Positions 6,651 through 41,600 of a DNA stretch of 64,000 bases are shown here, in pieces. The notes under the pieces were generated by a model, which made no database searches, had not been told where the DNA came from, and worked only from the letters and a program-made list of their open reading frames with translations. The translations under genes and the position numbers were made by a program. The first letter of the stretch is position 1. Every line of letters begins with the position of its first letter. Origin of the DNA: Phyllobates terribilis (lineage: Eukaryota). Location: NCBI RefSeq assembly GCF_046119375.1, contig NW_027362767.1, positions 203,670,001 through 203,734,000 on the forward strand, written 5' to 3'.

Positions 6651-7270
6651 CATACGTGTCAAACTCCAGCCCGTGGGCCAAATCTGGCCCGTAGGGTGGT
6701 TATATTAGGCCCTCAACACCTGAACCACCACCCCTATGTGGGCCCGTTATACTGTATGGAGGACTATGTGGGGCTCATTATACTGTATGGAGGGCTATGT
6801 GGGGCCCATTATACTGTATGGAGGACTATGTGGGCCCATTATACTGTATGGAGGACTATGTGGGGCTCATTATACTGTATGGAGGACTATGTGGGGCCAT
6901 TATACTGTATGGAGGACTATGTGGGCCCATTATACTGTATGGAGGACTATGTGGACTCATACTGTATGGAGGACTATGTGCAGCCCATTATACTGTATGG
7001 AGGACTATGTGGGGCCCATTATACTGTATGGAGGACTATTTGCGGCCCCTTATTCTGTATCAATGATTGTGTGTTGCCATTATACTGTATGGAGGACTAT
7101 GTGGGGCCCATTATACTGTATGGAGGACTATGTGGGGCCCATTATACTGTATGGAGGACTATATGGGGCCCATTATACTGTATGGAGGATTATTTGCGGC
7201 CCCTTATTCTGTATAGATGATTGTGTGGGGCCCATTATACTGTATGGAGGACTATGTGCGGCCATTATTC
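6651..7270 (+). mobile_element. Left end of a hAT-like non-autonomous element with an internal minisatellite (right TIR not found)
   Basis: Starts CATACGTGTCAAACTCCAGCCCGTGGGCCAAATCTGGCCCG, resembling CAGGGGTGTCAAACTC...GGCCCGCGGGCC hAT termini, and runs into a tandem array. Confidence 0.55.
6735..7268. repeat. 30/31-bp minisatellite (CATTATACTGTATGGAGGACTATGTGGGGCC), ~17 copies
   Basis: The unit is directly visible. ORF peptides are 10-aa periodic (CMEDYVGPLY). Confidence 0.9.
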
Positions 7271-7271
7271 T

Positions 7272-7405
7272 TGGGTGAGGAACATATAAGTGTGGAGGAG
7301 AGAATGAGGTCTTGAGGGGACCGGAGATTACGTGTTGGAAGGTAACGGGAGGTCACAGATTATGGTCGGCTTTGTACGTCAGTGTTAATAGTTTGAACTG
7401 GATAC
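7272..7405 (-). mobile_element. L2/CR1-group LINE ORF2 C-terminal fragment
   Basis: The minus strand translates IQFKLLTLTYKADHNL...PTRNLRS..DLILS, matching the conserved L2 ORF2 C-terminal motif (recalled family knowledge). Confidence 0.65.
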
Positions 7406-8057
7406 TTCTGCGCTCCACATTAGCAGCAGCAAAGATAATAAGTTGGGCAGCTAATGAACAAAGTCAGTATTGAATCATGTGCACTGTACCACACATGATT
7501 CAAACAGTCTTCATCCTTTACTGAGTACTACTATCACGTTATTATACTGTACCTTTTTATGACCCTATGGGTTATGGTATTGGTTAGAGCTGGATTACAG
7601 CTAGGGGTAATACTAAAGTTAGGCCTATGTTTAAGGTTACGGAGAGTGTATTAAAACGGTTATGTAAAACAATATAAAAAAAAAAAATTGTGGGTTAAAA
7701 GGAAAATTATAATTATGTGCTTTGGAAATAGGGGTTTAACACTGGGCTGGTGGAAGGTACTCGGGAAGTGTTAACAATACACCAGTTGAGTGCAAAATAC
7801 CAGCCTTGCCTAGGATGCTGGCATGCTCCCAATTCTAATACAGTCGTGGCCGAAAGTGTTGGCACGCTTGAAATTGTTCCAGAAAATGAAGTATTTCTCC
7901 CAGAAAATTATTGCACTTACACATGTTTTGGTATACAAACGTTTATTTCCTTTGTGTGTATTGGAACAACACATAAAAAACTAAAAAAAGGCATATTGGA
8001 CAAAATTTTGCACAAAACCCCCAAAATGGGCCAGACAAAATTGTTGACCCCCTCAAC

Positions 8058-9075
<1,018 letters not shown>

Positions 9076-9080
9076 GCTTA

Positions 9081-9266
9081 GGCCACGGCCCCACTATCAG
9101 TATTTAGTCAGTATTCGATCAGTATTTTTTCTCAGGAGTGGGAGGCAAAACCAGGAGAGGGTGATAAATGCAGAATTGATACCTTTTCTCTGATTGTTCC
9201 TCACCTGTTTTTTTCTCCCACTCCTGAGAAAAATACTGACCAAATACTGATAGTCGGGCCGTGGCC
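9081..9266. mobile_element. PIF/Harbinger-type MITE (186 bp) with TTA TSD, nested in the Tc1
   Basis: TTA|GGCCACGGCCCACTATCAGTATTT ... AAATACTGATAGTCGGGCCGTGGCC|TTA. The element is palindromic with a 3-bp TWA duplication. Confidence 0.85.
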
Positions 9267-10364
9267 TTAGTTTCAGGTGTGATTTTCTTATTGCCCACAC
9301 CTGTTACTTGCCACAGGTGAGTTTGAACGAGCATCACATGCTTGGAATAATGTTGTTTACACACAATTTTGGAAAGGTGACAACAATTGTGTCCGGACCA
9401 TTTTTGGTGTTTTGTGTGAAATTAGATTCAATTTGCCTTTTTTCTCTGTTTTTTTGTGTTGTTCCAATACACACAAAGGAAATAAACATGTGTATAACAA
9501 AACACGTGGAATTAAAATGATTTTCAGGGAGAAATACTTCATTTCCGGGAACAATTTCAAGGGTGCCAACACTTTCGTCCATGACTGTATGTGCCAAGCT
9601 GTTGTCTTTTTTTAGTGAGATTTGGAGAAATAATGTTATCATTTATTGTTGTATTTGAAGTTTCCATTTCCTGATCTGGTGTTGAATTAACCCATATCAG
9701 ATCAGTGACAGTATGTGCAGCCACACCAGATGACGCCATCCGCCCCATATTCTGATATACAGTATTTGCACTTTAAATCAACCTTTGAATATATTCATAA
9801 TTTTCCTGATTGCCAATACTATAACTTTTCATTATGAATTAATTTATTTGCTGAAAAAAATGAACTTTGGGATGTTCTATTTATAAAAGTAATCAGTTCA
9901 CTGCAATAAGTAGCCACAAATCAGTAACAATTAAGTCATCTATATAAATTATCTCTTGTTGCAATTAAAAATGGGAGCAATTTTCTGCAATAAACAGACT
10001 TCCCATTAACAGTCCGGGATCTGTTCTACTATTTTTATTTAATTTTTATAGTTTTTTCGCCAGATGTTTTTTCACGCCTGCGTTGCTGATATGACACTCT
10101 AGCGTTGGGGTCATATGACGGCCCATGCATGGCGCCAACAGTTAACGACTAAAGTAGCTCATCACACCAGTGTCACAGTCATTTGACACCAATAATCACC
10201 ATCGTGGCGACTAGTTTATTAGTGACTGCATAGGTCCATGACTGGCAACAAGTTATTTAATTTTATAAACTAAGCCAGGGCACTGTAGATTACTTTTCAG
10301 AGCACCCTGACAGCTTAAACAAAATGTCTCCAGTCAGTGCACCCCACCACCACGGCAATGCAAA

Positions 10365-13300
10365 TATGTCAGGAGGATGCAATCACCAACATGCTTTTTG
10401 CATTTGTGAAATTTGGAACTAAGCAATTATATTATTATAAAGAAGAATTACTGGAGAAATGTAATACAATGTTAGTGTATAAATGACGTGTGCTGTAACT
10501 TCATGTCTATACTGGACCCTCAGCTTTCATCCTGTGTAACTCCAGTTGCGTGTAGAAATCAATATTCTGTAGTACTCACTGATGTTACTTCATAAAAGAT
10601 TTCATAAGTTTGTTCTGCCTCGTTCCTATAACCTATAATAATGCAACAAGTACTGACCATTGTTCATGCTGCAATAATATAGAAGGGAAATGTAATATTA
10701 GGACAAGTACTTTGTACAAACTAACATCAATTTTTTGAACTTGTATTATAATTCCAGGCCAACAGGTTAACAGGAACCCAAAGCCAAGGGGGTTAGCTCT
10801 TGGTGTACGGCAAGTATCATTCCTGACGCTTCTGCTTGGTTGGTCTAACCTTGGACTGGTGGATGGACACTGTCATGTCTCACGACTTGGGAATCTACAG
10901 TATTATATTGTATTGTTGCTGTTGTGTTGCTATGCAATAAGATTTGCCTTTTAGCAGTTTGTCCTCCTTCTCTCCCTGTCTGCCTCCCTAGTTCTGAATC
11001 AGTAACCCCTCCCTTCTTCTTCCTCATTCTGAGTATGTCAGCCATGTTAAGAAGCTCATGTCTTGCATCTCTGGATCAGAATAGTCTTTTTTACCTACTG
11101 TATTTGTGCATAAATACAAGAATTCAGCTTGAAAATAAACCTTCTTCTGGAATCTTCATACATGCCTCTGCAGTGGAGTTAAGTTATCTGATGAAATCTC
11201 TTTGTGTGAGTACTGGTACATAGAGACATCATAGAAATGGTGTCTCAAGCGCCACACACTCACAGCCTAGTTATGGAGTCAGAATAGACACATTATCCAA
11301 ACTGCACAACCCCCACTTCCTACAGTTGGTGGGGGATATAAGAAATGTAACTATTTAATATTCATTGTACTCATACCCTTATTAGCTCACTGTCCAGTTA
11401 CAGACCTTAAAATATCAAGACATCTTGGAAACTTGAGTCCTGACTTGGGGAAATAAAAAACGGAACAATCGAGAGGTTCACATGTTGGTGGTCAGCCAAG
11501 TCTGTGTGTATTCCATTGTTCTTCTACCCTCGGTAAACAGAAAAGCATCTATAGATCAAAATATTTAGGTATTTTCTGTTATTTCTTTTTAATTTGTAAC
11601 TGTCTTGGATATTTGTATATTACTTTATTTTGTCTCTTTTTTGTAAGCAGGGTACTTTTTATATTAAAACTTAAAACTTTACGTATGGACCTTGGATGCT
11701 CTAAATAATCTATAGCCTTTTGGATGAAGAACTCACTCTGTAATGGATAAAAATGCAAAAGCATCAAGTATATCATTAATACATTTCCAAGGTTGAGTAA
11801 AGCAAAAATAAAGGAAGGAGTCTTTATTGGACCTGAGATTCGTAAGCTTCTTCAAGATAAGGAGTTTCTCCGTTTACTGAAGCTTTTATGCATTAATTAC
11901 CGTATATTCCGGCGTATAAGACGACTTTTGAAGACTGAAAAATCTTCTGTCTAGTCTGGGGTCGTCTTATACGCCGGTAATGCTTTTGAACTTTCAGAAA
12001 TTGACATGCGGGGATACTCTGGGGGTGTTAATAAGCTGCCGTGGCCGTATCCCTGCCATGTCGGAGTTAATATAAGGTGGAGGGAGTTAAAATACGGCGG
12101 CGGTAGGTCCAGACGGTCAGCGCTTCTGTGCTGAAATGGACACATCGCTGCGTATTCCCAGCTCCGGACACAGCGCAGGGCTTCTGTGCCGACAGCTTTC
12201 ACTTGTCACAGAAGCGCTGCGCTGTGTCCGGAGCAGGTAGGTTCGCATCGCTTCTGTGACAATATATGAAAAGCCGGCAATTCAGCAGCAGCATAAGCCG
12301 GCACCCGACAATTTAGAATAGAAAGAATAGAGCTTCACACATAGATTAGATAGATAGAAACATGTCAGTCACATATATAAGAAGTACAGTGACAGTGTTG
12401 CTTACTGTACTTGTCATTTAGTGTAAAGGATTTATTAAAACAAATAATAGTGTTTTCATGCACCGTCTCTTTAAGAAAGCCGGCCGGCAATTCAGCATCT
12501 GTACCCGACAATTTATAACAGAAAGAATAGAGCTTCACACATAGATTAGATAGATAGAAACATGTCAGTCACATATATATGAAGTACAGTGACAGTGCTG
12601 GTTACTGTACTTGTCATCTAGTGTTAAAATAACGGATTTATTTAAAAAAAAATTGGCGTGGGGTTCCCCTTAATTATAGTCTCTAGCGGAGGTTAAGCAG
12701 ACAGCTGGGGCAAATGTTTGAAGCCTGGGAAGGGGGTAATACCCACGGAGCTTCCCAGGCTACTAATATCAGCCCCCAGCTGAATACATAGCCTTTACTA
12801 GCTATTAAAATGGGGGACCCCCCAAAAAAATGACGTGGGGTCCCCCCTAATTTAATAGCTAGCACAGGCTAGGCAGACAGCTGGGGGCTGATATTAATAG
12901 CCCAGGAAGGGTGCCATGAATATTGGCCCCCTCCCAGGCTAGAAACACCAGCCGTCAGCCGCCCCAGAAATGGCGCATCCATAGGATGCGCCAATTCTGG
13001 CACTTAGCCTCGCTCTTCCACGCTGCCCTGGTGCGGTGGCAGGGGGTAATAGGGCTGGGGTTGATGTCAGCTTATAATGCCAGCTGACATCAAGCCCAGG
13101 TTAGTAATGGAGAGGCGTCTATAAGACACCCCCATTACTAACCCCATAGTCAAAGTTAAAAAAAACACAAACACCCAGAATAAAGTCCTTTAATTGAAAT
13201 AAACACACAATTCTTTATTGTTCTAAATTAAACCATACTTACCATCACGCCCATTCCAGCTGAAGCCAACGATCTCCTGCAATAAAATAAAAATAATAAA

Positions 13301-15115
13301 GCAACCTCATCCTTACCTTTCCATGGTTCCCAGGACAGCTTCAGCTCTGCTACATCGAGATGACAGGCTGGACCGCAGCAGAACGCTGCCATCCAGCCTG
13401 TCATCCCGCAGACACTGAGAAGCGCAGGCATGCTTGCGCTCCTCAGTGTCTCTCTGTGACGGCATCCAGATGAGCCGACAATGAACTCAGCTCACCTCCT
13501 GGACGTCCGTCACTGACAGCGTGGGAAACTTCTACTGCGCATGCGGGGAGCAGGAGAATTTTCCCACGCTGTCAGTGACGTGCATGAGGTGAGCCGAGTT
13601 CATTGGACATGATCTCGGCTCATCTGGATGCCGTCACAGTCAGACACTGAGGAGCACAAGCATGCCTGCGCTTCTCAGTGTCTGCCGCATGGCAAGCTGA
13701 ACGGCAGCGTTCTGCTGCGGTGCAGCCTGTCATGTGAATGTAGCAGAGCTGGAGCTGTCCTGGGAACCATCGAAAGGTAAGGATGAGGTTGCTTTATTAT
13801 TTTTCTTTTATTGCAGGAGATCGTTGGCTTCAGCTGGAATGGGCGTGATGGTAAGTATGGTTTAATTTAGAACATTAAAAAATTGTGTGTTTATTTCAAT
13901 TAAAGGACTTTATTCTGGGTGTTGTGTTTTTTTTAATTACTTTACTAGAAATTCATGGTGGTCATGTCTAATATTGGCGTGACCCCATGAATTTCGGGCT
14001 TAGGGCCAGCTGATAATGCCAAGCTGGCCTTAACCCCTTTATTACCCAGTGAGCCACCGCACCAGGGCCCTGGATGAGTTGGGTACAGCGCCAGAAGATG
14101 GCGCTTCTATGAACGTGCCATTTTCCGGGGCGGCTGCGGACTGCAATTTGCAGCGGGGGGGCCCAGAAAGCTTGGGTCTCCCTGCGCTGCAGATTCCAGC
14201 CCCCAGCTGCCTTGTTGTACCTGGCTGGACACAAAAATAGGGCGAAGCCCCACGTCTTTTTTTTTTTAATTATTTCATGAAATAATTAAAAAAAAAAGGG
14301 CTTCCCTATATTGTTGTGTCCGGCTAGGTACAAATAGGCAGCTGGTGGTTGGGGGCAGCCCGTTCCTGCCTGCTGTACCTGACTGGACACAAAAATATGG
14401 CGAAGCCCACGTCAACATTTTTGGGAAAAATTAATTACAAAATTAATAATAATTTAGGGACTGCATCTTTATTAACCCCTCAATTGTCATTTAGTGTTAA
14501 AATAAAGGATTTTTTAAAAAGAAAATTGGCGTGGGATCCCCCATCATTATAGTCTCTAGCGGAGGTTAAGCAGACGGCTGGGGCAGATGTTTGAAGCCTG
14601 GGAAGGGGGTAATACCCACGGAGCTCCCCAGGCTACTAATATCAGCCCCCAGCTGAATACCTAGCCTTTACTAGCTATTACAATGGGGGACCCCCCCAAA
14701 AAATGACGTGGGGTCCCCCCTATTTTAATATGTTTATGAGTGACAGTTTTCCTGCTATATACCTGCATGTCATAAGAATTTAAAGTAAAAAAAGGACCAT
14801 GTTAAATTCAAATCTGTTTTTTTTTAATTTTTACCGGTGTTTGGTATGCGTTGGAAAAGGGGTAGTCTTATACGGTGAATATATCCTAAACTCTATATTT
14901 TAACAGGAAAGTAGGGGGGTCGTCTTATACGCCAGGTCGTCTTATACGCCGGAATATACGGTATATGTAGCAGTCACAGGAAAACTCTTTAATATCACAG
15001 AAACAAGAGAACTAAAAATGTCATGGTCAGATTTGCATTCAGGAGGTGAAAATCATTAAGAAATGGGAAATTTCATATCTGAACCTGACAAGTTTTGAGA
15101 ATATGTAGCACAGTG
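10365..15115 (+). pseudogene. Highly decayed Chapaev3-like (CMC superfamily) transposase/element relic, split by the element at 11900-14961
   Basis: Plus-strand fragments read MSGGCNHQHAFCICE (~10366) and TFPRLSKAKIKEGVFIGPEIRKLLQDKEF (~11780-11865), matching motifs I recall from Chapaev3 transposases. The sequence resumes after 14963 and ends ...GCACAGTG at 15115. The family call is from memory, not from a search. Confidence 0.5.
11900..14961. mobile_element. Non-autonomous TcMar (Tc2/pogo-like) element, 3062 bp, TA TSD, carrying a non-coding foldback cargo
   Basis: TA|CCGTATATTCCGGCGTATAAGACGAC ... GTCGTCTTATACGCCGGAATATACGG|TA is a perfect 26-bp TIR. Subterminal GTCGTCTTATACGCC repeats lie near 11961 and 14920. 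There is no transposase ORF. Confidence 0.9.
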
Positions 15116-16602: not shown

Positions 16603-16619
16603 TAATGGTTCACAGTGGT

Positions 16620-18700: not shown

Positions 18701-19692
18701 TGTGGCACCCCAGGGGTCTGGTTTCCACAGTAACAGCAGTGTTATGTCTGAGAGCAGGTGGGAGGTCTCTTGGTCAGGAATCCTATGCATGCCACACCTC
18801 CTGCCCGGTCCTGGGAGGGGAAGGACTTCCCCTATATAAACCTGGGGCTGAGGCAGGGTTAGAGAAGAAGAGTAGAGAGAAGAAGATAAGCAGTGATAGG
18901 AAAGAAAGATCAGGAGCTCTGTGGGAGTCGTGCTAAGAGGAGATCAGGGCTGGAAGCTGTAGAGCTCGCCCTGATTGAAGATTTCTTACCGGACCCGGAG
19001 TCCGAGGCTGTGGGGACTAACTCCTACCCAGCAGCAGAAACCGACCGGCAGGGGATTTCAGGTCCTCTGGCCCAGAAACCCGAAGGCTCGGTCACACGTT
19101 TGGGACCAGCACCGCCGTCGTGGAGCGGAAGCTACTAGAAGGCCCCGAGTCAAAGGCCATACGGGTGAGCACCACACGGTACACTCAGGGACGTGGGCTA
19201 CCTTTACCCGCCTCTAGCAAGGTAGCCAGAAGAGTACAATTAGTTGGGGAGGCCTACAACTCCGCCTGGCCAAGGGGGATCCCATCTGCTCAAGGACTGA
19301 CCAGGCCCCAACCGCTAGCCAGTACTCCGGGAGGGTCTATCTTTGTCACCAGTAAAGACCCTGAACTACACCGTATCGTCTCTGAGTGATTCCTGCTACC
19401 CCCATCATCCACGTCGGCTGCCCTGAGGCCATACCCCTCCCGTTGGGGGTTATACCATCCACGCTGCACCATCCTCCCACCGGTCTCAGCGGTTTGCCCT
19501 GCAGCGGCAGCTCCATAGCTGCATTCAACGGGTGGCGTAGTCGTTCTACATCTACTGCTAATATACCGCCACTTAGTCTGACTCCCAGGGCACGGACCGG
19601 GTCACCGCCACGAGACTACTACCCCTATCAGATCCGGCTCCGGGTAGTCCCTGGGTGCGCAACGCTACATCACATAGGCCCAGGGCGCGTCA
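18701..19692 (+). repeat. 5' LTR of gypsy element 1 (TATATAAA at 18833-18840; candidate AGTAAA polyA signal at 19351-19356)
   Basis: TGTGGCACCC...GGGCGCGTCA, nearly identical to 25589-26580 (6 substitutions found by eye). Confidence 0.95.
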
Positions 19693-19697
19693 ACTTT

Positions 19698-19715
19698 TGG
19701 TGTAGTCGGCAGGAT
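19698..19715 (+). promoter_or_regulatory. Primer binding site, tRNA-Ser
   Basis: TGGTGTAGTCGGCAGGAT, 5 nt after the LTR. It is a 17/18 match to the complement of the tRNA-Ser 3' end (TGGCGTAGTCGGCAGGAT). Confidence 0.85.
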
Positions 19716-20133
19716 ACCGTGCCCGCAACCACCGGGTACTGCGTGCCTGAAAAAGACTGTTCAAACTTACCAGTGGTGAAGATTCCCGCCATCCGGCGCC
19801 ATCTTCTACCTTCTTCCCGCCATCCGCGAAGTTTTCCCGCCATCCGGCGCCATCTTCTGCCTTCTTCCCGCCATCCGTGGAGTTTTCCCGCCGTTGGACG
19901 CCATCTTGAAGACGCCGCGCGGGAAGAAGAGGGGCGTGGACTCCGAAAGCGCGCGAGAACTGAAGCCCCGCCTCACGTCCGGACGTTGCGTAAGGTCCTG
20001 GAAGGAGCCCAGCAGACGCCGACGTCACAGGAGCGCGACGGAAGGTCCTCAACCCTGACGATCCACTGCGGAGCCGCGGCCTACGGAAGAGGATCATCGC
20101 AAGGTAGGCCACGGTCCACTAGGGGGGAGGAAG

Positions 20134-25579: not shown

Positions 25580-25588
25580 AGGGAGGAA
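25580..25588 (+). promoter_or_regulatory. Polypurine tract of element 1
   Basis: AGGGAGGAA lies immediately before the 3' LTR TG. Confidence 0.8.
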
Positions 25589-27795: not shown

Positions 27796-27806
27796 GTACC
27801 CCCCTT

Positions 27807-29261
27807 CTAAGAGGATCCTCCGGATCCCCTAGGACCAGGCTTATCAGGAAATCTCCTGTGAAACGCTCTGATAAGTCTGGACTCGGAAACATCATCTGAC
27901 CTCACCCAAGAGTTATCCTCGGGTCCGAAACCTTTCCAGGCCACAAGATACTGTAAACTACCTCTATACCGTCTAGAGTTAAGGATGCGAGAAATTTCAT
28001 ATTCCCCGTCCTCCACCACCGGTGGAACAGAGGCAGAGGCGTCACCATCCGACACAACAGCTTTTTTTAACAGAGAGACATGAAATACCGGATTAATTCT
28101 CCAGGAGGTAGGAACCTCCAACCTAACAGCAGATTGGTTGACTACCTGAAGCACCTTAAAGGGCCCTACAAACTTGGGACCCAATTTCTTAGAAGGAATC
28201 CTCAACCGCAGATTCCTAGAGGACAACCAAACCATGTCACCAACAGCGAACAAAACCTCCTGTCGTTTCCTATCAAAGTAGTCTTTAGATTTTCTGTTGG
28301 CCTCCTGAAGATTACCACGCACATCCGTCCAAATTCTCTCCAAATCACCGGAAAAATTCTCCTCCTCAGGCACGGCAGATCCCAACTTGGAGAACGACCC
28401 AAACGACGGATGTCTCCCAGAACAACAAAAAAAAGGCGAACAACCAGCAGAAGAAGATGTATGATTGTTCAGAGCAAATTCAGCAAGTGGCAGAAACTCA
28501 GACCACCCCTCTTGATTGTCTGCCACAAAACAACGCAAGAACTGCTCAACATCCTGGTTTTTCCTTTCTGTCTGGCCATTAGATTCAGGATGATATCCGG
28601 ACGAGAACGACAAATGAACTCCCAACCTGTCACAAAAGGCACGCCAAAAACGAGCCACGAACTGAGGACCCCTATCAGAAACAATGTCAGTAGGAACGCC
28701 ATGAAGTCTGACAATTTCCTTGACAAAGGCCTTAGCGAGAGTTTTAGCGCAGGGCAGTTTGACGAAGGGAACCAAGTGACACATCTTGCTAAAACGGTCC
28801 ACGACCACCCAGATGACAGTAAAACCCTCAGAGGGGGGAAGGTCAGTTATAAAGTCCATAGCCAAATGTGTCCAAGGAGCACTGGGAACCTCCAAAGGAC
28901 AAAGCAACCCCGCAGCAGGAGTATGTGAGGACTTAGATCTAGCACATATAGTACATTGACGCACCCACTTAATGACCTCCTTCTGCCATCCAGGCCACCA
29001 AAAACTGCGACCCACCAGTCTCTTGGTCTCAGAGATTCCGGGATGACCTGCCAACCGAGACTCGTGACACTCAACAAACAAATCTCTCCTAAAGGTCCCA
29101 GGCACAAACAACCTCCCATGAGGAGTGTTAGATGGGGCATTCTCCTGTGCTTTAAGAATCTCATCTTCCAAAACGGAGTCCAAAGCAGCTATCACAACAC
29201 CTTCTTGTAAAATGTTCTCCTCTTTCTCAGCACCGACTATGGGAGAAAAACTGCGAGACAA
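27807..29261 (-). CDS. pol: C-terminal part of Gag-Pol: integrase plus chromodomain (in frame with the upstream ORF, beyond a premature TAG)
   Basis: CHESRLAGHPG...CTIC zinc finger. MDFITDLP, VSDRGPQF and GQTERKNQ catalytic core. GPF motif. YEISRILNSRRYRGSLQYLVAWKGFGPEDNSW chromodomain. Confidence 0.92.
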   Translation of the reverse strand: MSRSFSPIVGAEKEENILQEGVVIAALDSVLEDEILKAQENAPSNTPHGRLFVPGTFRRDLFVECHESRLAGHPGISETKRLVGRSFWWPGWQKEVIKWVRQCTICARSKSSHTPAAGLLCPLEVPSAPWTHLAMDFITDLPPSEGFTVIWVVVDRFSKMCHLVPFVKLPCAKTLAKAFVKEIVRLHGVPTDIVSDRGPQFVARFWRAFCDRLGVHLSFSSGYHPESNGQTERKNQDVEQFLRCFVADNQEGWSEFLPLAEFALNNHTSSSAGCSPFFCCSGRHPSFGSFSKLGSAVPEEENFSGDLERIWTDVRGNLQEANRKSKDYFDRKRQEVLFAVGDMVWLSSRNLRLRIPSKKLGPKFVGPFKVLQVVNQSAVRLEVPTSWRINPVFHVSLLKKAVVSDGDASASVPPVVEDGEYEISRILNSRRYRGSLQYLVAWKGFGPEDNSWVRSDDVSESRLIRAFHRRFPDKPGPRGSGGSS

Positions 29262-29333
29262 GGCATCCGCCTTAACATTCTTAGTACCAGGGATGTAAGT
29301 AACGGAGAAATTAAACCGCGAGAAAAACAGTGC

Positions 29334-31874
29334 CTACCTAGCCTGACGGGCATTCAGGCGCTTGGCAGCATCAAGATATATCAGATTTTTATGATCCGTA
29401 AGAACCTGAACGGGAAATTCCGCACCTTCCAAGAAGTGGCGCCAGTGTTCAAATGCGAGTTTATTAGCCAATAATTCCCGATTACCAATATCGTAATTCA
29501 GTTCAGTCTCCGAAAATTTTTTTGAAAAAAAGGCACAGGGATGTAATCCATCCCCGTTATCCTGAGACAATACTGCGCCAACCCCCACAGAGGAAGCATC
29601 AACCTCAACCAAAAACGGCTTAGTCACATCAGGCTGCATAAGGATGGGAGCAGAGGTGAACCTCTCCTTGAGATACACAAAAGCTTCAATGGCCTCAGAA
29701 GACCACTGAACCGCATCAGCACCTTTCCTGGTGAGATCGGTCAGAGGTTTGACAATACTAGAAAATTTTTTTATGAATTTTCTGTAATAATTGGCGAAAC
29801 CTAAAAACCTCTGTATCGATTTCAAACCAATAGGCCTAGGCCATTCCTGCACAGCCTGAACCTTAACCGGGTCCATCTCAAAACCATCGCTGGAGATAAT
29901 GTAGCCCAAAAATCTAATTCTCTGTACAGCGAACTCACATTTCTCCAGCTTAGCAAAAAGCGAATTGTCCATTAATAACTGTAATACCTCACGCACGCTC
30001 CGCCAATGAGACTCCAGATCCGGCGAATAAATCAAAATGTCATCCAAATACACAACCACATTTTTGCCGATCAAAGGTCTAAGGATGTCATTAATCAGAT
30101 TCTGAAAAAATGCAGGAGCATTAGTAAGACCAAAAGGCATAACCAGATTCTCAAAATGACCCACAGGAGTGTTAAAAGCAGTCTTCCATTCATCACCCTC
30201 CTTCATGCGCAACAGATTGTATGCCCCCTTAAGGTCAATTTTAGAGAACCACTTGGCCCCCATTAACTGGTTAAACAGATCAGGAATCAATGGCAGTGGG
30301 TAAGGATTGCGTACAGTAATTTTGTTAATCTCACGAAAATCCAGACAAGGACGTAAACCGCCGTCCTTTTTTTTTACAAAAAAAAATCCAACCGCCACAG
30401 GAGACTTAGAGGGCCTAATGTGACCGGCGGCCAAACTTGTCTGTATGTATTCCTCCAAAGCCTTCCTCTCAGGAATAGTAAGGTTAAATAAACGACTTTT
30501 AGGAAGAGTCGCTCCAGGGACAAATTCAATAGAACAATCATAGTCTCTATGGGGAGGCAAAACCTGCGATTCCTTCTCAGAAAAAACTCTCCAAAAATCC
30601 TGAATAGGAACAGGCAATTCTCCCCTATCCAAAGCTGCAATACGCCCGTTACAACACTTGTCATAACATTTATGGCTCCAGGATTTAATTTCACTGGTAG
30701 ACCAATCCAGTACAGGATTGTGAAATTTTAACCAGGGCAATCCCAATATTACTGGAGAAGGCAAGTTATTCAACACTACCAAATCCAATTTCTCATGGTG
30801 AACACCATTAATAGTGAGAGGAAATTCACAGACCTTGAGAGTAATATTCTTCAAAGGGGAACCATCCACAGAAACCACAGCAATGGGGGATGATAAAGGT
30901 TCGGGTTTTAAATTGAGTCTTTCCAAGAATCCCCCATCAATTACATTCAGAGTAGACCCACAATCAACAAACACCCGAAATTCCATTAATTTTTCCTGAG
31001 CAATCGTGGAAGCAGCTAAAAATACACCCTTGGAATTTAAACAGGCAATACGGGCATGACTGACCATTTTTTTTTCTTTCTTCATACGAAGCTCACAGTC
31101 TTTAATTAAATGACCAGATTTTCCGCAATAGAAACACAAGCCTTCAGAAAATCTGCGATCTTTTTCTTGAGAGCGAGGTGCCACCGATCCAATCTCCATC
31201 GGTTCACCACTGTTAGTACACACATTCTCATAACCAGAAACTGACATAGCAGAGGATTTGCTCTCATTAACCCTTGCACGCAGTCTCCTATCCACCCGTA
31301 TAGCTAATTGCATAGCCTGTTGCAAATCTTCAGGTGTAGGATAAGCAATTAGCAGGTCTTTAACCCTTTCATTGAGCCCAGCAAGAAATAGACTTTTCAG
31401 AGCAGAATCGTTCCACCCTGTTTGAGTAGACCAACGACGGAAATGAGTACAATATTTTTCCACATTACCTGATCCCTGTTTCAAACATCTCAACTCAGTC
31501 TCAGCTGATGCGACACGGTCAGGATCATCATATAATAGTCCCAAAGCAGAAAAAAAACTATCCACTGATCTGAAGCATGTATCACTAGGTTGCAAAGAAA
31601 AGACCCACTCCTGAGGCTCTTTGCGCAAAAGTGACATTATGAACCCTATGCGCTGGGATTCATCTCCAGAGGACTTGGGTCTCAAACGAAAATACAATAA
31701 GCAAGCATTTTTAAATGAAAAAAATTCTCGGTGTTCACCAAAAAATAAATCCGGCAAACATACCTTAGGCTCCAAGAAATGTGCTCCAGGACAGTTACTC
31801 ACGTGCTGACGGAGCTCGGCCACCTCCAGAGAGAGTCCCTGCAGGCGATGAGCCAAATCCTGAACCGACACCAT
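29334..31874 (-). CDS. gag-pol: Gag-protease-RT-RNase H part of the fused Gag-Pol (846 aa, truncated by TAG)
   Basis: PEG10/RTL-like gag, CFYCGKSGHLIKDC knuckle, protease VFVDCGSTL, RT IDLKGAYNLLR and YLDD, RNase H VDASSVGVGAVL and TDHKNL. Confidence 0.93.
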   Translation of the reverse strand: MVSVQDLAHRLQGLSLEVAELRQHVSNCPGAHFLEPKVCLPDLFFGEHREFFSFKNACLLYFRLRPKSSGDESQRIGFIMSLLRKEPQEWVFSLQPSDTCFRSVDSFFSALGLLYDDPDRVASAETELRCLKQGSGNVEKYCTHFRRWSTQTGWNDSALKSLFLAGLNERVKDLLIAYPTPEDLQQAMQLAIRVDRRLRARVNESKSSAMSVSGYENVCTNSGEPMEIGSVAPRSQEKDRRFSEGLCFYCGKSGHLIKDCELRMKKEKKMVSHARIACLNSKGVFLAASTIAQEKLMEFRVFVDCGSTLNVIDGGFLERLNLKPEPLSSPIAVVSVDGSPLKNITLKVCEFPLTINGVHHEKLDLVVLNNLPSPVILGLPWLKFHNPVLDWSTSEIKSWSHKCYDKCCNGRIAALDRGELPVPIQDFWRVFSEKESQVLPPHRDYDCSIEFVPGATLPKSRLFNLTIPERKALEEYIQTSLAAGHIRPSKSPVAVGFFFVKKKDGGLRPCLDFREINKITVRNPYPLPLIPDLFNQLMGAKWFSKIDLKGAYNLLRMKEGDEWKTAFNTPVGHFENLVMPFGLTNAPAFFQNLINDILRPLIGKNVVVYLDDILIYSPDLESHWRSVREVLQLLMDNSLFAKLEKCEFAVQRIRFLGYIISSDGFEMDPVKVQAVQEWPRPIGLKSIQRFLGFANYYRKFIKKFSSIVKPLTDLTRKGADAVQWSSEAIEAFVYLKERFTSAPILMQPDVTKPFLVEVDASSVGVGAVLSQDNGDGLHPCAFFSKKFSETELNYDIGNRELLANKLAFEHWRHFLEGAEFPVQVLTDHKNLIYLDAAKRLNARQAR

Positions 31875-31911
31875 GATGGAACAGAAAAATCTTTTCTTAG
31901 AGAATTTGCAG

Positions 31912-31920
31912 GCTGGACTT
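31912..31920 (-). promoter_or_regulatory. Self-priming PBS (Tf1/sushi type)
   Basis: Minus-strand AAGTCCAGC, 2 nt after the 5' LTR, is exactly complementary to GCTGGACTT in the LTR (plus 32248-32256). That LTR motif lies ~30 nt downstream of TATTTAA. There is no TGG tRNA-type PBS. Confidence 0.8.
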
Positions 31921-31922
31921 AC

Positions 31923-32343
31923 TGTTATGTTCTGCTACCAGAGCTAAGGAAAGAGAGGAGATCTGTCCCTACGATAGAACTCAGCTGAATCCCTACGATG
32001 TAACAGGGAACCTGATCCTGCGATCAGACCTGCTAAAGTCCTAAGCTAGTCTGTACAGAGACCTATAGATGTGGGGAAGGAATCCCTACAAGTACTAAGG
32101 ACTGGGAGGAAAATGGGACACCTCCTAACAGAAATAGTAGCAGACAGACGAACAAACAAAATATATAGAACATAGAGGTCCGTAGACCAAGCAAACTAAC
32201 AGAGTTAGATACAAAGCACAGGCTAGCTAGAAAGTAGTTATACAATGAAGTCCAGCAAAGCCAGAAGGGCGGAGCAGGATTAAATAGGCCCAACAAGGTC
32301 ATGTGACCAGCAAAGGAAAAAACCTAAGAGCAAGGTTCTAACA
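31923..32343 (-). repeat. 5' LTR of chromovirus element 2 (421 bp), TATA-like TATTTAA at plus 32280-32286
   Basis: Direct repeat of 27376-27795. Confidence 0.95.
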
Positions 32344-33047: not shown

Positions 33048-33117
33048 GTGTATGGTTAGTCTGAGTGCTTAGCTTTTTGGAGCTTGCTGGGCCTGTGGGA
33101 AATTGATGACTCATGGC

Positions 33118-36100
33118 TAGTGTTGAGCATTCCGATACTGAAATATCGGGTATTGACCGATATTCGCGGTATCGGAGTTCCGATACTGAGTTCCGATACT
33201 TTTACAATATCGAATACCGGAATCGAAAGTTCACATAATGCCTGCGCTCTGCAGTGTCTCTGAAGGATGACAAGCTGGATGGCAGCGCTCAGCTGCGATC
33301 CAGCCTGTCATCAGAATGCCATCCCAGCGTGGGAGAATTCTCCTGCTCAAGCGCTGACATTACATTATCTCCCTTACATTACAATTAAATGGAATAGCAG
33401 GAATTAATATTTTTTTAAGACGTTAATGCCACAGCCATGGTGGTTGTGGTATTACAGTGGTTGCCCAAATCGATGGGAACAGTGCTCACAGTGAAACATG
33501 AAAAGCCAGCAATTCATCAGCGGCATATACCGGTAACCGACAATTTAGAACAGAAAGAATAGAGCTTCACACATAGATTAGTTAGATAGAAACATGTCAG
33601 TCACATATATAAGAAGTACAGTGACAGTGTTGCTTACTGTACTTGTCATTTAGTGTTAAAGGATTTATTTAAAAAATAATAGTGTTTTCATGCACCGTCT
33701 CTTTAAAAAAGCCGGCCGGCAATTCAGCATCTGTACCCGACAATTTAGAACAGAAAGATAGAGCGTCACACATAGATTAGATAGATAGAAACATGTCAGT
33801 CACATATATATGAAGTACAGTGACAGTGTTGATTACTATACTTGTCATTTAGTGTTAAAATAAAGGATTTCTTAAAAAAAAAATTGGCGTGGGGATCCCC
33901 GTAATTTTAGTCTCTAGCGGAAGTTAAGCAGACGGCTGGGGCAGATGTTTGAAGCCTGAGAAGGGGGTAATACCCATGGAGCTTCCCAGGCTACTAATAT
34001 CAGCCCCCAGCTGAATACCTAGCCTTTACTAGTTATTAAAATGGGGGACCCCCAAAAAAATGACGTGGGGTCCCCCCTATTTTAATAGCTAGCAAAGGCT
34101 AGGTAGACAGCTGGGGGCTGATATTAATAGCCCAGGAAGGGTGCCATGAATATTGGCCCCCTCCCAGGCTAGAAACACCAGCCATCAGCCGCCCCAGAAA
34201 TGGCGCATCCATAGGATGCGCCAATTCTGGCACTTAGCCTCGCTCTTCTCACTGCCCTGTAGCGGTGGCAGTGGGGTAATAGGGCTGGGGTTGATGTCAG
34301 CTTATAATGCCAGCTGACATCAAGCCCAGGTTAGTAATGGAGAGGCGTCTATAAGACACCCCCATTACTAACTCCATAGTCAAAGTAAAAAAAAAACACA
34401 AACACCCAGAATAAAGTCCTTTAATTGAAATAAACACACAATTCTTTATTGTTCTAAATTAAACCATACTTACAATCACGCCCATTCCCGCTGAGCCAAT
34501 GTTTTCTGCAATAAAAGTAAAATAATAAAGCAACATCATTCTTACCTTTCCATGGTTCCCAGGACCAATCCAGCTCTGCTACATTCACATGACAAGCTGG
34601 ATCGCAGCAGAAAGCTGCCATCCAGCCTGTCATGCCGCAGACAGACACTGAGAAGCACAGGCATGCTTGCGCTTCTCACTGTCAGGCTGTGACGGCATCC
34701 AGATGAGCTGACAATGAACTCAGCTCACCTCATGCACGTCACTGACAGCGTGGGAGAATTCTCCTGCGCATGCGGTGAGCGTGAGAGACTCGGCTCATCT
34801 GGATACCGTCACAGCCTGACACTGAGGAGCGGAAGCATGCCTGCGCTTCTCAGTGTCTGCCTGCGGCATGACAGGGTGGATGGCAGCGTTCTGGAACGGG
34901 TCCAGCCTGTCATCTCGATGTAGCAGAGCTGAAGCTGTCCTGGGAACCATGGAAAGGTAAGGATGAGGTTGCTTTATTATTTTTCTTTTATTGCAGGAGA
35001 TCGTTGGCTTCAGCTGGAATGGGCGTGACGGTAAGTATGGTTTAATTTAGAACAATAAAGAATTGTGTGTTTATTTCAATTAAAGGACTTTTTTCTGGGT
35101 GTTGTGTTTTTTTTAAATACTTTACTAGAAATTCATGGTGGTCATGTCTAATATTGGCGTGACCCCATGAATTTCGGGCTTAGGGCCAGCTGATAATGCC
35201 AAGCTGGCCTTAACCCCTTTATTACCCAGTGAGACACCGCACCAGGGCCCTGGATGAGCTGGATACAGCGCCAGAAGATGGCGCTTCTATGAACGCGCCA
35301 TTTTCCGGGGTGGCTGCGGACTGCAATTTGCAGCGGGGGGGCCCAGAAAGCTTGGGCCTCCCTGCGCTGCAGATTCCAGCCCCCAGCTGCCTAGTTGTAC
35401 CTGGCTGGACACAAAAATAGGGCGAAGCCCCACGTATTTTTTTTTTTTAATTAGTTCATGAAATTCATGAACTAATTAAGAAAAAAAGGGCTTCCCTATA
35501 TTGTTGTGTCCAACCAGGTACAAATAGGCAACTGGTGGTTGGGGGCAGCCCGTTCCTGCCTGCTGTACCTGGCTGGATACAAATATAGTGCGAAGACCCA
35601 CGGCAATTTTTTTTTAATTATTCCCCCCCCCCCCGCTGCAAATTGCAGTCCGCAGCCACCCTGGAAAATGGCGCGTTCTTAGAAGCGCCATCTTCTGGCG
35701 CTGTACCCAACTCATCCAGGGCCCTGGTGCGGTGGCTCACTGGGTAATAAAGGGGTTAGGGCCAGCTTGGCATTATCAGCTGGCCCTAAGCCCGAAATTT
35801 ATTGGGGTCACGCCAATATTAAACATGACCACCATGAATTTCTAGTAAAGTATTTAAAAAAAAACACAACACCCAGAATAAAGTCCTTTAATTGAAATAA
35901 AGACACAATTCTTTATTGTTCTAAATTAAACCATACTTACAGTCACGCCCATTCCAGCTGAAGCCAACGATCTCCTGCAATAAAAGTAAAATAATAAAGC
36001 AACCTCATCCTTACCTTTCCATGGTTCCCACGACAGCTTCAGCTCTGCTACATCGAGATGACAGGCTGGACCGCAGCAGAACGCTGCCATCCAGCCTGTC

Positions 36101-37510
36101 ATCCCGCAGACACTGAGAAGCGCAGGCATGCTTGCGCTCCTCAGTATCTGGCTGAGACGGCATCCAGATGAGCCGAGTCTCTCACGCTCACCGCATGCGC
36201 AGGAGAATTTTCCCACGCTGTCAGTGACGTGCATGTGAGCTGAGTTCATTGTCGGCTCATCTGGATGCCGTCACAGCCAGACACTGAGGAGCGAAAGCAT
36301 GCCTGCGCTTCTCAGTGTCTGCGGCATGGCAAGCTGGATGGCAGCTTTCGGCTGTGATCCAGCCTGTCATCTCGATGTAGCAGAGCTGAAGCCGTCCTGG
36401 GAACCATGGGAAGGTAAGGATGAGGTTGCTTTATTATTTTTCTTTTATTACAGAAGACATTGGCTTCAGCTGGAATGGGCGTGATGGTAAGTATGGTTTA
36501 ATTTAGAACAATAAAGAATTGTGTGTTTATTTCAATTAAAGGACTTTATTCTGGGTGTTTGTGTTTTTTTTTAACTTTGACTATGGGGTTAGTAATGGGG
36601 GTGTCTTATAGACGCCTCTCCATTACTAACCTGGGCTTGATGTCAGCTGGCATTATAAGCTAACATCAACCCCAACCCTATTACCCTACTGCCACCGCTA
36701 CAGGGCAGTGGGAAGAGCGAGGCTAAGTGCCAGAATTGGCGCATCCTATGGATCCTTCTGGCTGATAGCTGGTGTTTCTAGCTTGGGAGGGGGCCAATAT
36801 TCATGGCTCCCTTCCTGGGCTATTAATATCAGCCCCCAGCTGTCTGCCTAGCCTTTGCTAGCTATTAAAATAGGGGGGACCCCACGTCATTTTTTTGGGG
36901 GGTCCCCCATTTTAATAGCTAGTAAAGGCTAGGTATTCAGCTGGGGGCTGATATTAGTAGCCTGGGAAGCTCCGTGGGTATTACCCCCTTCCCAGGCTTC
37001 AAACATCTGCCCCAGCCATCTGCTTAACCTCCGCTAGAGACTAAAATTACGGGGAACCCCACGCCAATTTTTTTTTTAATAAATCCTTTATTTTGGCACT
37101 AAATGACAAGTACAGTAACCAACACTATCACTGTACTTCATATATATGTGACTGACATGTTTCTATCTATCTAATCTATGTGTGATGCTCTATTCTTTCT
37201 GTTATAAATTGTCGGGTACAGGTGTATGCCGCTGATGAATTGCCGGCTTTTCATGTTTCACTGTGAGCACTGTTCCCATCGATTTGGGCAATCACCTCCC
37301 CGAATAAATCCTACATTATTCTTAGTTGTTTTACTTCATGTAGAATTAACCTACAAGGAAAGAAAGGGTTTATTCATTCTGATATTTGTGTCCCGTTGAC
37401 TTGCATTGGTTTCCAGTATCGGAATCGGCGATATCCGATATTTTTTGGGTATCAGCCCGATCCAATCCGATCCGATATTTCCTGATATCGGAAGGTATCG
37501 CTCAACACTA
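33118..37510. mobile_element. Non-autonomous hAT element, 4393 bp, 8-bp TSD CTCATGGC
   Basis: CTCATGGC|TAGTGTTGAGC ... GCTCAACACTA|CTCATGGC. Subterminal arrays of CCGATA/TATCGG motifs. No transposase. Confidence 0.92.
33457..37295. repeat. 3.8-kb nested inverted-repeat (foldback) module inside the hAT shell
   Basis: The outer arm GTGGTTGCCCAAATCGATGGG pairs with CCCATCGATTTGGGCAATCAC. Inner hairpins are centred near 34770, 35620 and 36220. Confidence 0.88.
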
Positions 37511-37519
37511 CTCATGGCC

Positions 37520-37897
37520 TTAGAGGGGTTTGGCTCAAGTCTGCAGCCACACTATGTGACTGCAAACTTGTGAATCCTCTCAGTGCGCACAGTTCATGCT
37601 GTGAGGATTCTCTCAGGAGCGGACGGTCATGTGACCACAAGCATGTGATTTTCATACTTTCAGCCACACAACTAGACATTGCCAGCCTCACTCAATCCTC
37701 TTGTATTCCGTAAGGCTGAGTGCATGTGATTCTATACAAGCAAATCACATGCTTGCAAGTCACACGCCCGCTCGCTCCCAGTGCAGGCACCGGAGAATTC
37801 TAACGGTGTGCACTGTGCGCGCTTGTGAGGATTCACAAGTCTGCAGCTACATAGAGGAACTCCAGATTGGAACCCCAAGCCTTGACAACCCCTTTAA
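37520..37897. mobile_element. Kolobok/T2-type MITE (same family as 32661-33047)
   Basis: Palindromic interior (AGTCTGCAGCCAC.../CAAGTCTGCAGC; GTGAGGATTC / GAATCCTC). Ends GACAACCCCTTTAA. Confidence 0.65.
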
Positions 37898-38499
37898 CTA
37901 TAGTGTTCTGTGTGGAATAGACAGTAGGAGGGGTAATATAGCAGAAGTTTTGGGAACTCAGGGACTAAGTGAAAGGCACTCAATTGTCAGAGTGTGGTGA
38001 GAGCGTCCTGTGGTGGCAATGCCCAGAGGATGCATCGGAGAGGGAAAGTGAGAGACAGACAACCCTTGGATGGTGACAGGGGGACAAAACCACTGGCGAT
38101 TCAGGAAACAATGACAGAGGGAGTGTCGGGGCCATTTAGGGCAGGGTTTGTGTCAAAGAAGTAGAGCACTAAAGGGAAGGTAAGAAATTGACACCCAACA
38201 TGTAGCTGGAAACTTAGCAAGTGGTGTACATTGTCATCCAAGAGGAACATTAATGTCACTGTTGTACTCAACAGAATCCATGATGTCTGTCATAGGGCAT
38301 TTACCAGTAACAACATTCTGAAAATTATGGTGCGGGTAAAGGATGATGACATTATGGCATTGTTAGAGAAATAGTCATCTGGCACAACCAGAAATGAAGA
38401 AATCATTAGCAGGTTATTTTGTCCATTTTAAGTTCTGATTCACTGTGACAATTCTACGTCCCTAGACCTCCATATTCCAGTCTTACCCACAGTCTAACA

Positions 38500-38684
38500 T
38501 TTTGTAGCGGTCTTTTGCGGCCAGCAGCTGACGTCGGCGTGCACGAGATCGGGGCAGTGGCAGTGACGTCATGTGCTCCCATTGCTTGCACGCTGAAGTC
38601 AGCTGCGGGCTGCAGTAGAGGACACCGCACGGCGGAGGACCGCAGGGAAGGTGAGAAATTATTTATTTTTTTTAAATCAGTGAG
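38500..38684 (+). other. CpG-rich leader abutting the satellite, resembling the internal part of a non-autonomous DNA transposon
   Basis: GC/CpG-rich segment (TGACGTC motifs), then GGAAG|GTGAG and a T-run, then the first monomer. No terminus was identified. Confidence 0.4.
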
Positions 38685-41600
38685 TACTGCATGGATGACT
38701 ATGGGCTGTGCATTATACTACATAGATGACTATGGGCTGTGCATTATACTACATGGATGACTATGGACTGTGCATTATACTACATGGATGACTATGGGCT
38801 GTGCATTATACAACATGGATGACTATGGACTGTGCATTATACTACATGGATGATTATGGTCTGTGCAATATACTACATGGATGACTATGGGCTGTGCATT
38901 ATACAACATGGATGACTATGGACTGTGCATTATACTACATGGATGATTATGGTCTGTGCAATATACTACATGGATGACTATGGGCTGTGCATTATACTAC
39001 ATGGATGACTATGGGCTGTGCATTATACTACATGGATGACTATGGGCTGTGCATTATACTACATGGATGACTATGGGCTGTGCATTATACTACATGGATG
39101 ACTATGGGCTGTGCATTATACTACATGGATGACTATGGGCTGTGCATTATACTACATGGATGACTATGGGCTGTGCATTTTACTACATGGATGACTATGG
39201 GCTGTGCATTATACTACATGGATGACTATGGGCTGTGCATTATACTACATGGATGACTATGGGCTGTGCATTATACTACATGGATGACTATGGGCTGTGC
39301 ATTTTACTACATGGATGACTATGGGCTGTGCATTATACTACATGGAGGACTATGGGCTGTGCATTTTACTACATGGATGACTATGGGCTGTGCATTATAC
39401 TACATGGATAACTATGGGCTGTGCATTATACTACATGGATGACTATGGGCTGTGCATTATACTACATGGATGACTATGGGCTGTGCATTATACTACATGG
39501 ATGACTATGGGCTGTGCATTATACTACATGGATGACTATGGACTGTGCATTATACTACATGGATGACTATGAGCTGTGCATTATACTACATGGATGACTA
39601 TGGGCTGTGCATTATACTACATGGATGACTATGGGCTGTGCATTATACTACATGGATGACTATGGGCTGTGCATTATACTACATGGATGACTATGGGCTG
39701 TGCATTTTACTACATGGATGACTATGGGCTGTGCATTATACTACATGGATGACTATGGGCTGTGCATTATACTACATGGATGACTATGGGCTGTGCATTT
39801 TACTACATGGATGATTATGGGATGTGCATTATACAACATGGATGACTATGGGCTGTGCATTATACAACATGGATGACTATGGGCTGTGCATTATACTACA
39901 TGCATGACTATGGGCTGTGCATTATACTACATGGATGACTATGAGCTGTGCATTATACTACATGGATGATTACGGTCTGTGCAATATACTACATGGATGA
40001 CTATGAGCTGTGCATTATACTACATGGTTGACTATGAGCTGAGCATTATACTACATGGATGACTATGAGCTGTGCATTATACTACATGGATGACTATGGG
40101 CTGTGCATTATACAACATGGATGACTATGGACTGTGCATTATACTACATGGATGACTATGGGCTGTGCATTATACTACATGGATGACTATAGGCTGTGCA
40201 TTATACTACATGGATGACTATGAGCTGTGCATTATACTACATGGATGACTATGGGCTGTGCATTATACTATATGGATGACTATGGGCTGTGCATTATACT
40301 ACATGGATGACTATGGGCTGTGCATTATACTACATGGATGACTATGGGATGTGCATTATACAACATGGATGACTATGGACTGTGCATTATACTACATGGA
40401 TGATTATGGTCTGTGCAATATACTACATGGATGACTATGAGCTGTGCATTATACAACATGGATGACTATGGACTGTGCATTATACTACATGGATGATTAT
40501 GGTCTGTGCAATATACTACATGGATGACTATGGGCTGTGCATTATACAACATGGATGACTATGGACTGTGCATTATACTACATGGATGATTATGGTCTGT
40601 GCAATATACTACATGGATGACTATGGGCTGTGCATTATACAACATGGATGACTATGGACTGTGCATTATACTACATGGATGATTATGGTCTGTGCAATAT
40701 ACTACATGGATGACTATGGGCTGTGCATTATACAACATGGATGACTATGGGCTGTGCATTATACTACATGGATGACTATGGACTGTGCATTACACTACAT
40801 GGATGACTATGGACTGTGCATCATATTACATGGATGATTATGGTCTGTGCATTATACTACATGGATGACTATGGGCTGTGCATTATACAACATGGATGAC
40901 TATGGACTGTGCATTATACTACATGGATGGCTATGGGCTGTGCATTATACTACATGGATGACTATGGGCTGTGCATTATACTACATGGATGACTATGGGC
41001 TGTGCATTATACTATATGGATGACTATGGGCTGTGCATTATACTACATGGATGACTATGGGCTGTGCATTATACTACATGGATGACTATGGGCTGTGCAT
41101 TATACAACATGGATGACTATGGACTGTGCATTATACTACATGGATGATTATGGTCTGTGCAATATACTACATGGATGACTATGAGCTGTGCATTATACTA
41201 CATGGATTATTATGGGCTGTGCATTATACTACATGGATGACTATGGGTTGTGCATTATACTACATGGATGACTATGGGCTGTGCATTATACTATATGGGT
41301 GACTATGAGCTGTGCATTATACTACATGGATGACTATGGGCTGTGCATTATACAACATGGATGACTATGGACTGTGCATTATACTACATGGATGACTATG
41401 GGCTGTGCATTATACTACATGGATGACTATGGGCTGTGCATTATACTACATGGATGACTATGGGCTGTGCATTATACTACATGGATGACTATGGGCTGTG
41501 CATTATACTACATGGATGACTATGGGCTGTGCATTATACTACATGGATGACTATGGGCTGTGCATTATACTACATGGATGACTATGGGCTGTGCATTATA

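Follow-up and report, generated by a model that had tools for sequence, protein, structure and literature searches.

Tandem arrays in the window

The window, i.e. the whole stretch of 64,000 nucleotides of Phyllobates terribilis DNA that was analyzed, harbors three tandem arrays. A sequence-only reading had described a large 31-bp array, a 31-bp array of ~17 copies and a 27-bp array, and all three were recovered by Tandem Repeats Finder:

3948 to 4494, forward strand: 27-bp array, more weakly related to the small 31-bp array
6651 to 6733, forward strand: sequence immediately left of the small 31-bp array, with a motif earlier labelled a hAT-like terminus
6734 to 7268, forward strand: 31-bp minisatellite of 17.6 copies (86% matches, 3% indels)
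38685 to 64000, forward strand: 31-bp satellite array of 816 monomers in 81 sequence types, running off the end of the window

The large array consists of 816.5 copies with 93% matches and is truncated by the end of the window; its length of at least 25.3 kb is therefore a lower bound, the far end lying beyond position 64000. It combines two properties of a classical satellite, a long homogeneous head-to-tail array and high genomic abundance, the latter based on contig depth (see below), which is a rough figure. The monomer has three ATGs, and the CpG observed/expected ratio (o/e) of the array is 0.02. No solo 31-bp monomers were found at positions 1 to 38650 when up to 8 mismatches were allowed. 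A metagenome scan with a degenerate monomer yielded 0 matches, as did an Rfam search of positions 1 to 39500.

The small 31-bp array is more decayed than the large one, and is open (free of stop codons) in every forward frame across most of its length. A word search of public assemblies with this open frame gave 0 hits among 873 candidates. Pfam analysis of the ORFs around the array detected only a Tc1 helix-turn-helix remnant, located in a separate dead Tc1 element (7838 to 9590) that does not include the array. No inverted copy of the motif at 6651 to 6691 was found in the whole 64 kb (up to 3 mismatches; blastn word size 7), no terminal inverted repeat pair brackets the small array within these 64 kb, and no significant fold was predicted for the flank (6630 to 6740). 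The core of the motif, GTGTCAAACTC, is present in the published end of TcMar-N15_AC, a Tc1/mariner element of Anolis. Assignment to Tc1/mariner on this basis was rejected: the match has 3 mismatches and was equalled by 29 of 100 shuffles. Because it is no better than chance, no superfamily is assigned to the motif.

Aligned in the same rotation and on the same strand, the consensus units of the two 31-bp arrays share 23 of 31 positions; the alignment is without gaps, as the sequence-only reading had stated. Among 20,000 shuffled monomers the mean was 13.8 and the maximum 22 identical positions, with none reaching 23, which excludes a chance likeness. Judged by this alignment, the two monomers are homologous. 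Eight positions are nearly fixed for different letters in the two arrays, and no intermediates were seen except for a single G at position 10 of the first monomer of the large array, shared with the small array and unique among 795 monomers. Each array has been homogenized separately. They also start in different phases, at about monomer position 6 and position 20, and a common left flank was refuted by blastn (word size 7) over the whole window on both strands. The proposed weaker kinship of the 27-bp array also held: the gapped cyclic score of its unit against the small array was matched by 0 of 600 shuffles, versus 14 of 600 against the satellite. The 17-copy array is a real but distant cousin of the satellite, drawn from the same repeat library and located in another sequence context; it is not its parent.

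The leader of the large array and its dispersal

The large array starts abruptly after a CpG-rich leader, which is itself preceded by single-copy DNA:

37924 to 38495, no strand assigned: single-copy DNA left of the leader
38505 to 38622, forward strand: CpG-rich imperfect palindrome, arms at ~38511 to 38565 and 38566 to 38619; its high-copy core ends at ~38620 to 38622
38623 to 38684, forward strand: linker of 62 bp that connects the palindrome to the array, with an A/T-rich tail and a splice-donor-like AAG|GTGAG at 38648/38649

Such an abrupt start had been noted from the sequence, and the values agree with it: the leader has a GC content of 0.62 and a CpG o/e of 0.96, compared to 0.22 in the unique flank. 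The palindrome opens with TAGCG just where contig depth climbs, and this start fits the hAT end motif YARNG. Positions 38511 to 38619 are self-complementary over 109 nt (70%), and the leader DNA is predicted to fold into a hairpin (-45.7 kcal/mol; z -5.55). The leader showed no similarity to the flank of the small array (6560 to 6740) or to any other part of the window, where no second terminus matching its first 18 bases was found either. A metagenome scan with the leader core gave 0 matches.

The region was compared with public contigs of an independent sample of the same species and of three other species. In the same-species sample, summed contig depth was ~8 over the single-copy DNA, 860 to 6,200 over the leader and 1e5 to 8e5 over the monomers; these sums do not equal copy number and are inflated by contigs that include monomers. 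A sharp boundary thus separates unique DNA from a dispersed leader at ~38500. The linker has a summed depth 10- to 20-fold below that of the palindrome core. One 444-nt contig of this sample is identical to the window over 38000 to 38424, and the single-copy flank is missing in two of the other species.

Both the leader and satellite-type monomers were found in all three further species. Leader variants are numerous: the palindrome plus linker occurs as about 100 or more contig variants in each of the four species, and at leader sites 78 to 99 distinct contigs per species carry the alternative letter. Ten sites are listed at which the leader studied here departs from the majority of copies, and at 4 of them the majority letter would restore a CpG. 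Variant monomers are likewise many, some of them nearer to the type of the small array, and the summed depth of the monomer varies more than 20-fold across the four species. Contigs that span from the leader into the array in other copies (records 19 and 20 among those listed) are 12 to 20% different. In another species, three contigs among those listed join 38622 to 38685, so that the palindrome runs straight into the array and the donor-bearing linker is absent. From a third species, one contig agrees with the window at ~155 of 156 bases over 38690 to 38845, the exceptions being a gap and a single changed letter. What looks like the unique flank in this contig shows 38 differences in 277 positions.

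The leader is thus repeated, as the sequence-only reading had predicted, and further copies of it, including some in another species, lie next to the same monomer; therefore, dispersed elements carry the 31-bp repeat. The satellite variant predates this locus, since it is abundant in the independent same-species sample and in the three other species. Both 31-bp arrays are members of an old repeat family common to several species, and the large block is a recent local amplification of that family, an ordinary expansion beside a dispersed element. The proposed route from seed array to satellite is borne out as far as the homology of the monomers and the carriage of the repeat by dispersed elements are concerned, but the choice of the small array, or of its element family, as the seed finds no support. 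Nor is the locus a snapshot of satellite birth, as had been suggested, since satellite-type monomers already abound across the genome and in the three other species.

Origin and growth of the large array

The reading preferred here, to which we give a probability of about 0.6, is that local amplification of the old 31-bp family produced the block of at least 25 kb, which abuts a dispersed module, with the small array a cousin and not a parent. The module would consist of a CpG-rich palindrome of ~115 bp and the 62-bp linker, inserted beside single-copy DNA at ~38505. The array probably began as a tandem repeat of this dispersed transposon-like module, a short repeat that one copy of the module may have carried or had attached to it. 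The mobility of the module is deduced only from its sharp left boundary and its dispersal, because neither a terminal inverted repeat pair nor a target-site duplication was seen, the far end of the array lying outside the window. The window also holds no transposase gene or 3' end for it.

In a broader version of this reading, which is possible although doubtful, the palindrome, linker and array would form the 5' portion of a still undescribed DNA-transposon family, FEDoR-like or hAT-like, in genomes of the poison-frog type. Such a family would have been spreading the 31-bp repeat in four or more species, and individual copies could swell into blocks of at least 25 kb by unequal exchange on a kilobase scale.

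Under the preferred reading, i.e. local amplification beside a dispersed module, the array keeps an internal record of its growth in nested duplications of 93 bp to 14 kb. The largest of these is given by two segments:

40512 to 49952, forward strand: left copy of a 9,441-bp duplication within the array, with a single mismatch at 45208
54560 to 64000, forward strand: right copy, 14,048 bp (453 monomers) downstream, extending past the window

Growth would have proceeded in place through unequal exchange or replication errors, successively via three-monomer units of 93 bp, segments of ~2.1, 6.8 and 7.3 kb and a latest step of 14 kb. The length of 25 kb given by the sequence-only reading holds in so far as the array spans at least 25.3 kb, but ~9.4 kb of it repeats, almost letter for letter, a stretch that lies earlier in the array. 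This second copy raises the question whether the 14,048-bp repeat might be a mis-joined or duplicated read path, the array being real and part of its length an artefact. One mismatch in 9,441 bp stands out against the 94 to 98% identity of the remaining internal duplications, and assembly inaccuracies in repeat-rich regions were reported in a frog study (PMC12054243). A very recent unequal exchange, however, would look alike, and the presence of the one mismatch speaks against a literal copy; the artefact is considered unlikely.

A less probable explanation holds that the leader is the promoter and non-coding first exon of a large gene family, with the array lying in intron 1; the leader would in that case have been dispersed by expansion of the gene family rather than by transposition. 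The high CpG o/e of the leader within a CpG-poor region would suit a promoter, as would a TGACGTCA site and the consensus-like donor in the linker. However, no downstream exon was found within the window, CpGs present in most copies have been lost from this one, the donor-bearing linker is absent from some copies in another species, and the high-copy core is a hairpin-forming palindrome.

The sequence-only proposal that one non-autonomous hAT-like family carries the seed, in which 6734 to 7268 would represent the seed stage and another copy, expanded ~50-fold, the 25-kb block, is the most improbable: it accounts for the homologous monomers of equal period and strand, the shared G (1 of 795 monomers) and the repeated leader, but it is opposed by the unrelated left flanks, the differing junction phases, the eight near-fixed differences, the abundance of satellite-type monomers in four species, and a 6651 motif that has no mate terminus in the window and whose core has its sole published match, a non-significant one, in the Anolis Tc1/mariner element.

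Comparison with known systems

The library model of satellite DNA is reportedly due to Fry and Salser in 1977. As in this model, the same monomer variants are common to the four species studied here at very different abundances, judged from the more than 20-fold range in summed depth; the model is silent on flanking modules. Dispersed satellites have been reviewed (PMC10048060). No new question is opened by the present locus, since the transposon-linked origin of satellites, in frogs included, is well reviewed.

Tandem repeats borne by MITEs are known from Xenopus, namely miDNA4 (Tc1/mariner type) and Xstir from Xmix. The tandem motif of these MITEs occurs as one unit in most copies and as arrays or satellite DNA in others (PMC9659126, PMC6947457, PMC12628747). 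They have defined terminal inverted repeats flanking the repeat, whereas no such pair was found here in the window.

In architecture, the locus resembles the recently described FEDoR of Rana temporaria. This dispersed non-coding element starts with a pair of inverted repeats lying close together, behind which come tandem arrays of short units, and it has been proposed to spread tandem repeats genome-wide (PMC12054243). FEDoR is ~3.5 kb in length and has four fixed internal arrays whose unit is 22 bp; an inverted pair closes the element, and target-site duplications are present (PMC12054243). The palindrome-plus-array module likewise starts with adjacent inverted arms, followed by a linker and the 31-bp array, and its many dispersed copies are matched here by an abrupt edge against unique DNA. 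Unlike in FEDoR, the unit here is 31 bp and the array at least 25 kb, with its far end beyond the window. The locus adds one more dissected case of dispersed elements and tandem repeats feeding each other in the very large genomes of frogs.

Tandem arrays and the kinship of their units

The following tandem arrays were found by Tandem Repeats Finder:
1-2130: 51-bp array truncated at the left window end, 41 copies, 79% matches
3948-4494: 27-bp array
6734-7268: small 31-bp array, 17.6 copies, 86% matches, 3% indels
38685 to the window end: big 31-bp array (the satellite), 816.5 copies, 93% matches

By our own segmentation the big array consists of 816 monomers of 81 sequence types. Its 31-bp unit contains three ATGs; 275 monomers equal the consensus, from which the monomers lie on average 1.2 of 31 positions away. 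The sequence-only reading had aligned the satellite monomer without gaps to the small-array unit, and this alignment was confirmed. The two consensus units are identical at 23 of 31 positions, ungapped, in the same rotation and on the same strand, while 20,000 shuffles of one unit, compared in all rotations and on both strands, gave a mean of 13.8 and a maximum of 22. Since 23 exceeds the best of these shuffles, the two units are homologous. The gapped cyclic score of the 27-bp unit was matched by 0 of 600 shuffles for the small-array unit and by 14 of 600 for the satellite unit; judged from these unit sequences it is a weaker relative of the 31-bp units, in line with the weaker shared core noticed earlier. 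The 51-bp unit was unrelated to the 31-bp family in the same comparison.

Further repeats lie between the two 31-bp arrays:
12266-14730 and 33457-37295: hairpin-rich repeat complex on either side of both LTR elements, some of it repeated directly (92-96%), some in inverse orientation (465 nt at 95%, 23.8 kb apart)
18701-25888 (+): Ty3/gypsy-type LTR retrotransposon; 300-nt LTR stretches (18701-19000, 25589-25888) 99% identical; gag frame with zinc knuckle, then an open pol frame of 1,418 aa covering RT, RNase H and integrase
27375-32221 (-): second Ty3/gypsy-type element; LTR stretches 99% identical; separate frames for gag-protease-RT-RNase H (846 aa) and integrase-chromodomain (484 aa)
The two parts of the hairpin-rich complex look like one large foldback-type repeat region divided by retrotransposon insertions.

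The small array as proposed seed, and the growth of the big array

The small array had been regarded as the seed from which the satellite arose. When 38300-38690 was compared with the rest of the window on both strands (blastn, word size 7), only the palindrome of the leader, the CpG-rich stretch directly left of the big array, matched itself. Nor did the sequences flanking the small array or the 27-bp array match anything at the leader (blastn, word size 7). The left junction lies near monomer position 6 in the big array and at position 20 in the small array. Furthermore, at the eight positions where the consensus units differ, each array is nearly invariant; the small-array letters occur there only 0-24 times among 795 big-array monomers. 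Only the first big-array monomer hints at an intermediate: it has G at position 10, as the small array does. A parent-offspring relation is disfavoured because flanks, junction phases and near-fixed positions differ, and because the satellite variant is neither local nor new. It is abundant in public contigs of four species, and the picture of a snapshot of satellite birth is therefore abandoned. The observed likeness of the arrays stands; its interpretation as a path from seed to satellite is only partly supported.

The motif at 6651-6691, previously taken as a hAT-like terminus, has no inverted partner in the window, and the small-array flank that carries it showed no significant fold. The only match of its core in the transposon literature was the end of a Tc1/mariner element of Anolis (PMC3014272), a match that was not significant here. 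A dead Tc1-type transposon (7838-9590) begins 570 bp beyond the right end of the small array. Its inverted ends measure 152 nt (87%), and its ORF at 8450-8761 (minus strand) retains a remnant of a Tc3-type helix-turn-helix. This transposon was rejected as host of the small array, which is not contained in it.

A simple expansion of about 50-fold does not describe the big array either, which shows nested duplications with steps of up to 14,048 bp instead. Self-comparison revealed that 54560-64000 repeats 40512-49952 at a shift of 14,048 bp; over 9,441 bp the copies differ by a single mismatch (45208/59256), and the duplication continues up to the window end. Older internal duplications, with shifts of 2,107, 6,757 and 7,315 bp, are 94-98% identical, and three-monomer units recur locally. 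These nested duplications point to nested unequal exchange of ever larger segments as the mode of growth. For the last step (14,048 bp), a very recent segmental duplication and an artefact of assembly are the two options.

The leader module and its distribution

Public contigs were available for the same species (several samples) and three other species. Those of one independent same-species sample and of one run per other species were compared over 37300-38850 at 80% likeness. All runs are contigs, so that summed depth is a rough guide and not a copy number. The stretches of the window, with their depths in the same species, are:
37924-38495: single-copy flank; summed depth ~8, one 444-nt contig identical over 38000-38424
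38496-38651: leader; summed depth 860-6,200, present in all three other species
38505/38511-38622: imperfect palindrome of the leader; 109 nt self-complementary at 70%
38623-38684: linker, 62 bp, of lower copy number than the palindrome
38624-38643: linker sites; all-contig depth ~310-600, 18-31 contigs with an alternative letter
38685 onward: monomers; summed depth 1e5-8e5

The flank was absent from the contigs of two of the three other species at 80% likeness. In the third, the only contig on it differs at 38 of 277 positions, and over 38690-38845 a contig of that species departs from the window by a single letter and a single gap. Summed monomer depth reached 2.3e6 in one of the other species and 1e4-1e5 in the other two. 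Variable sites of the leader had 78-99 distinct contigs with an alternative letter in each of the four species; at the linker sites these numbered 11-26 in the other three. Loose contig ends carried many further monomer variants, some nearer the small-array type. Because contigs of four species carry it in many variants, the 31-bp family is old, abundant and shared, a distribution that fits the satellite 'library' picture. Left of the flank, 37300-37507 belongs to a repeat whose abundance is extreme in each of the four species (summed contig depth 1.6e5-1.2e6, against ~8 for the neighbouring unique DNA).

It had been predicted that the leader is repeated and recurs beside the monomer. Indeed, contigs from other copies span leader to array in the same species (two records, 12-20% different) and in another species, where three contigs join 38622 directly to 38685. 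Judging by this joint and the fall in depth at 38616-38624, the high-copy core stops at the right edge of the palindrome, which folds at -45.7 kcal/mol compared to -28.1 for shuffles (z -5.55). The repeated region starts against single-copy DNA at TAGCG (38505), which fits the hAT end motif YARNG; this start has no mate within the window. Leader GC is 0.62 and its CpG o/e 0.96; for the unique flank the o/e is 0.22, for the array 0.02. Of the 10 listed sites at which most copies differ from the window copy, 4 would regain a CpG with the majority letter; the window copy is thus somewhat decayed, and the family to which it belongs even richer in CpG. As a less likely alternative, the leader could be a promoter shared by a gene family.

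Another inverted pair followed by an array is formed by 3299-3807 and the 27-bp array: a 105-nt inverted pair (3299-3403 and 3700-3807, 77%) lies just upstream of this array, the first units of which are decayed and begin near 3820. Directly after the array, in 4500-4760, come exon-like pieces bearing GTGAG donors, a polypyrimidine tract and its CAG acceptor, and a short frame opened by ATG. This region has no similarity to the leader (38505-38684).

Comparison with known systems

The transposon-linked origin of tandem arrays and satellites has been well reviewed (PMC6947457, PMC9659126, PMC12628747), and Xstir and miDNA4 of Xenopus are cases in frogs. The leader with its 31-bp array is a further, modest addition to these documented cases. 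The closest known architecture is that of FEDoR, a dispersed non-coding element of Rana temporaria with two adjacent inverted repeats, tandem arrays, a second inverted pair and target-site duplications (PMC12054243). For the second inverted pair and the target-site duplications, the corresponding far end lies outside the window; shared with FEDoR are the adjacent inverted pair, the tandem array that follows it, and dispersed copies with a sharp boundary to unique DNA.
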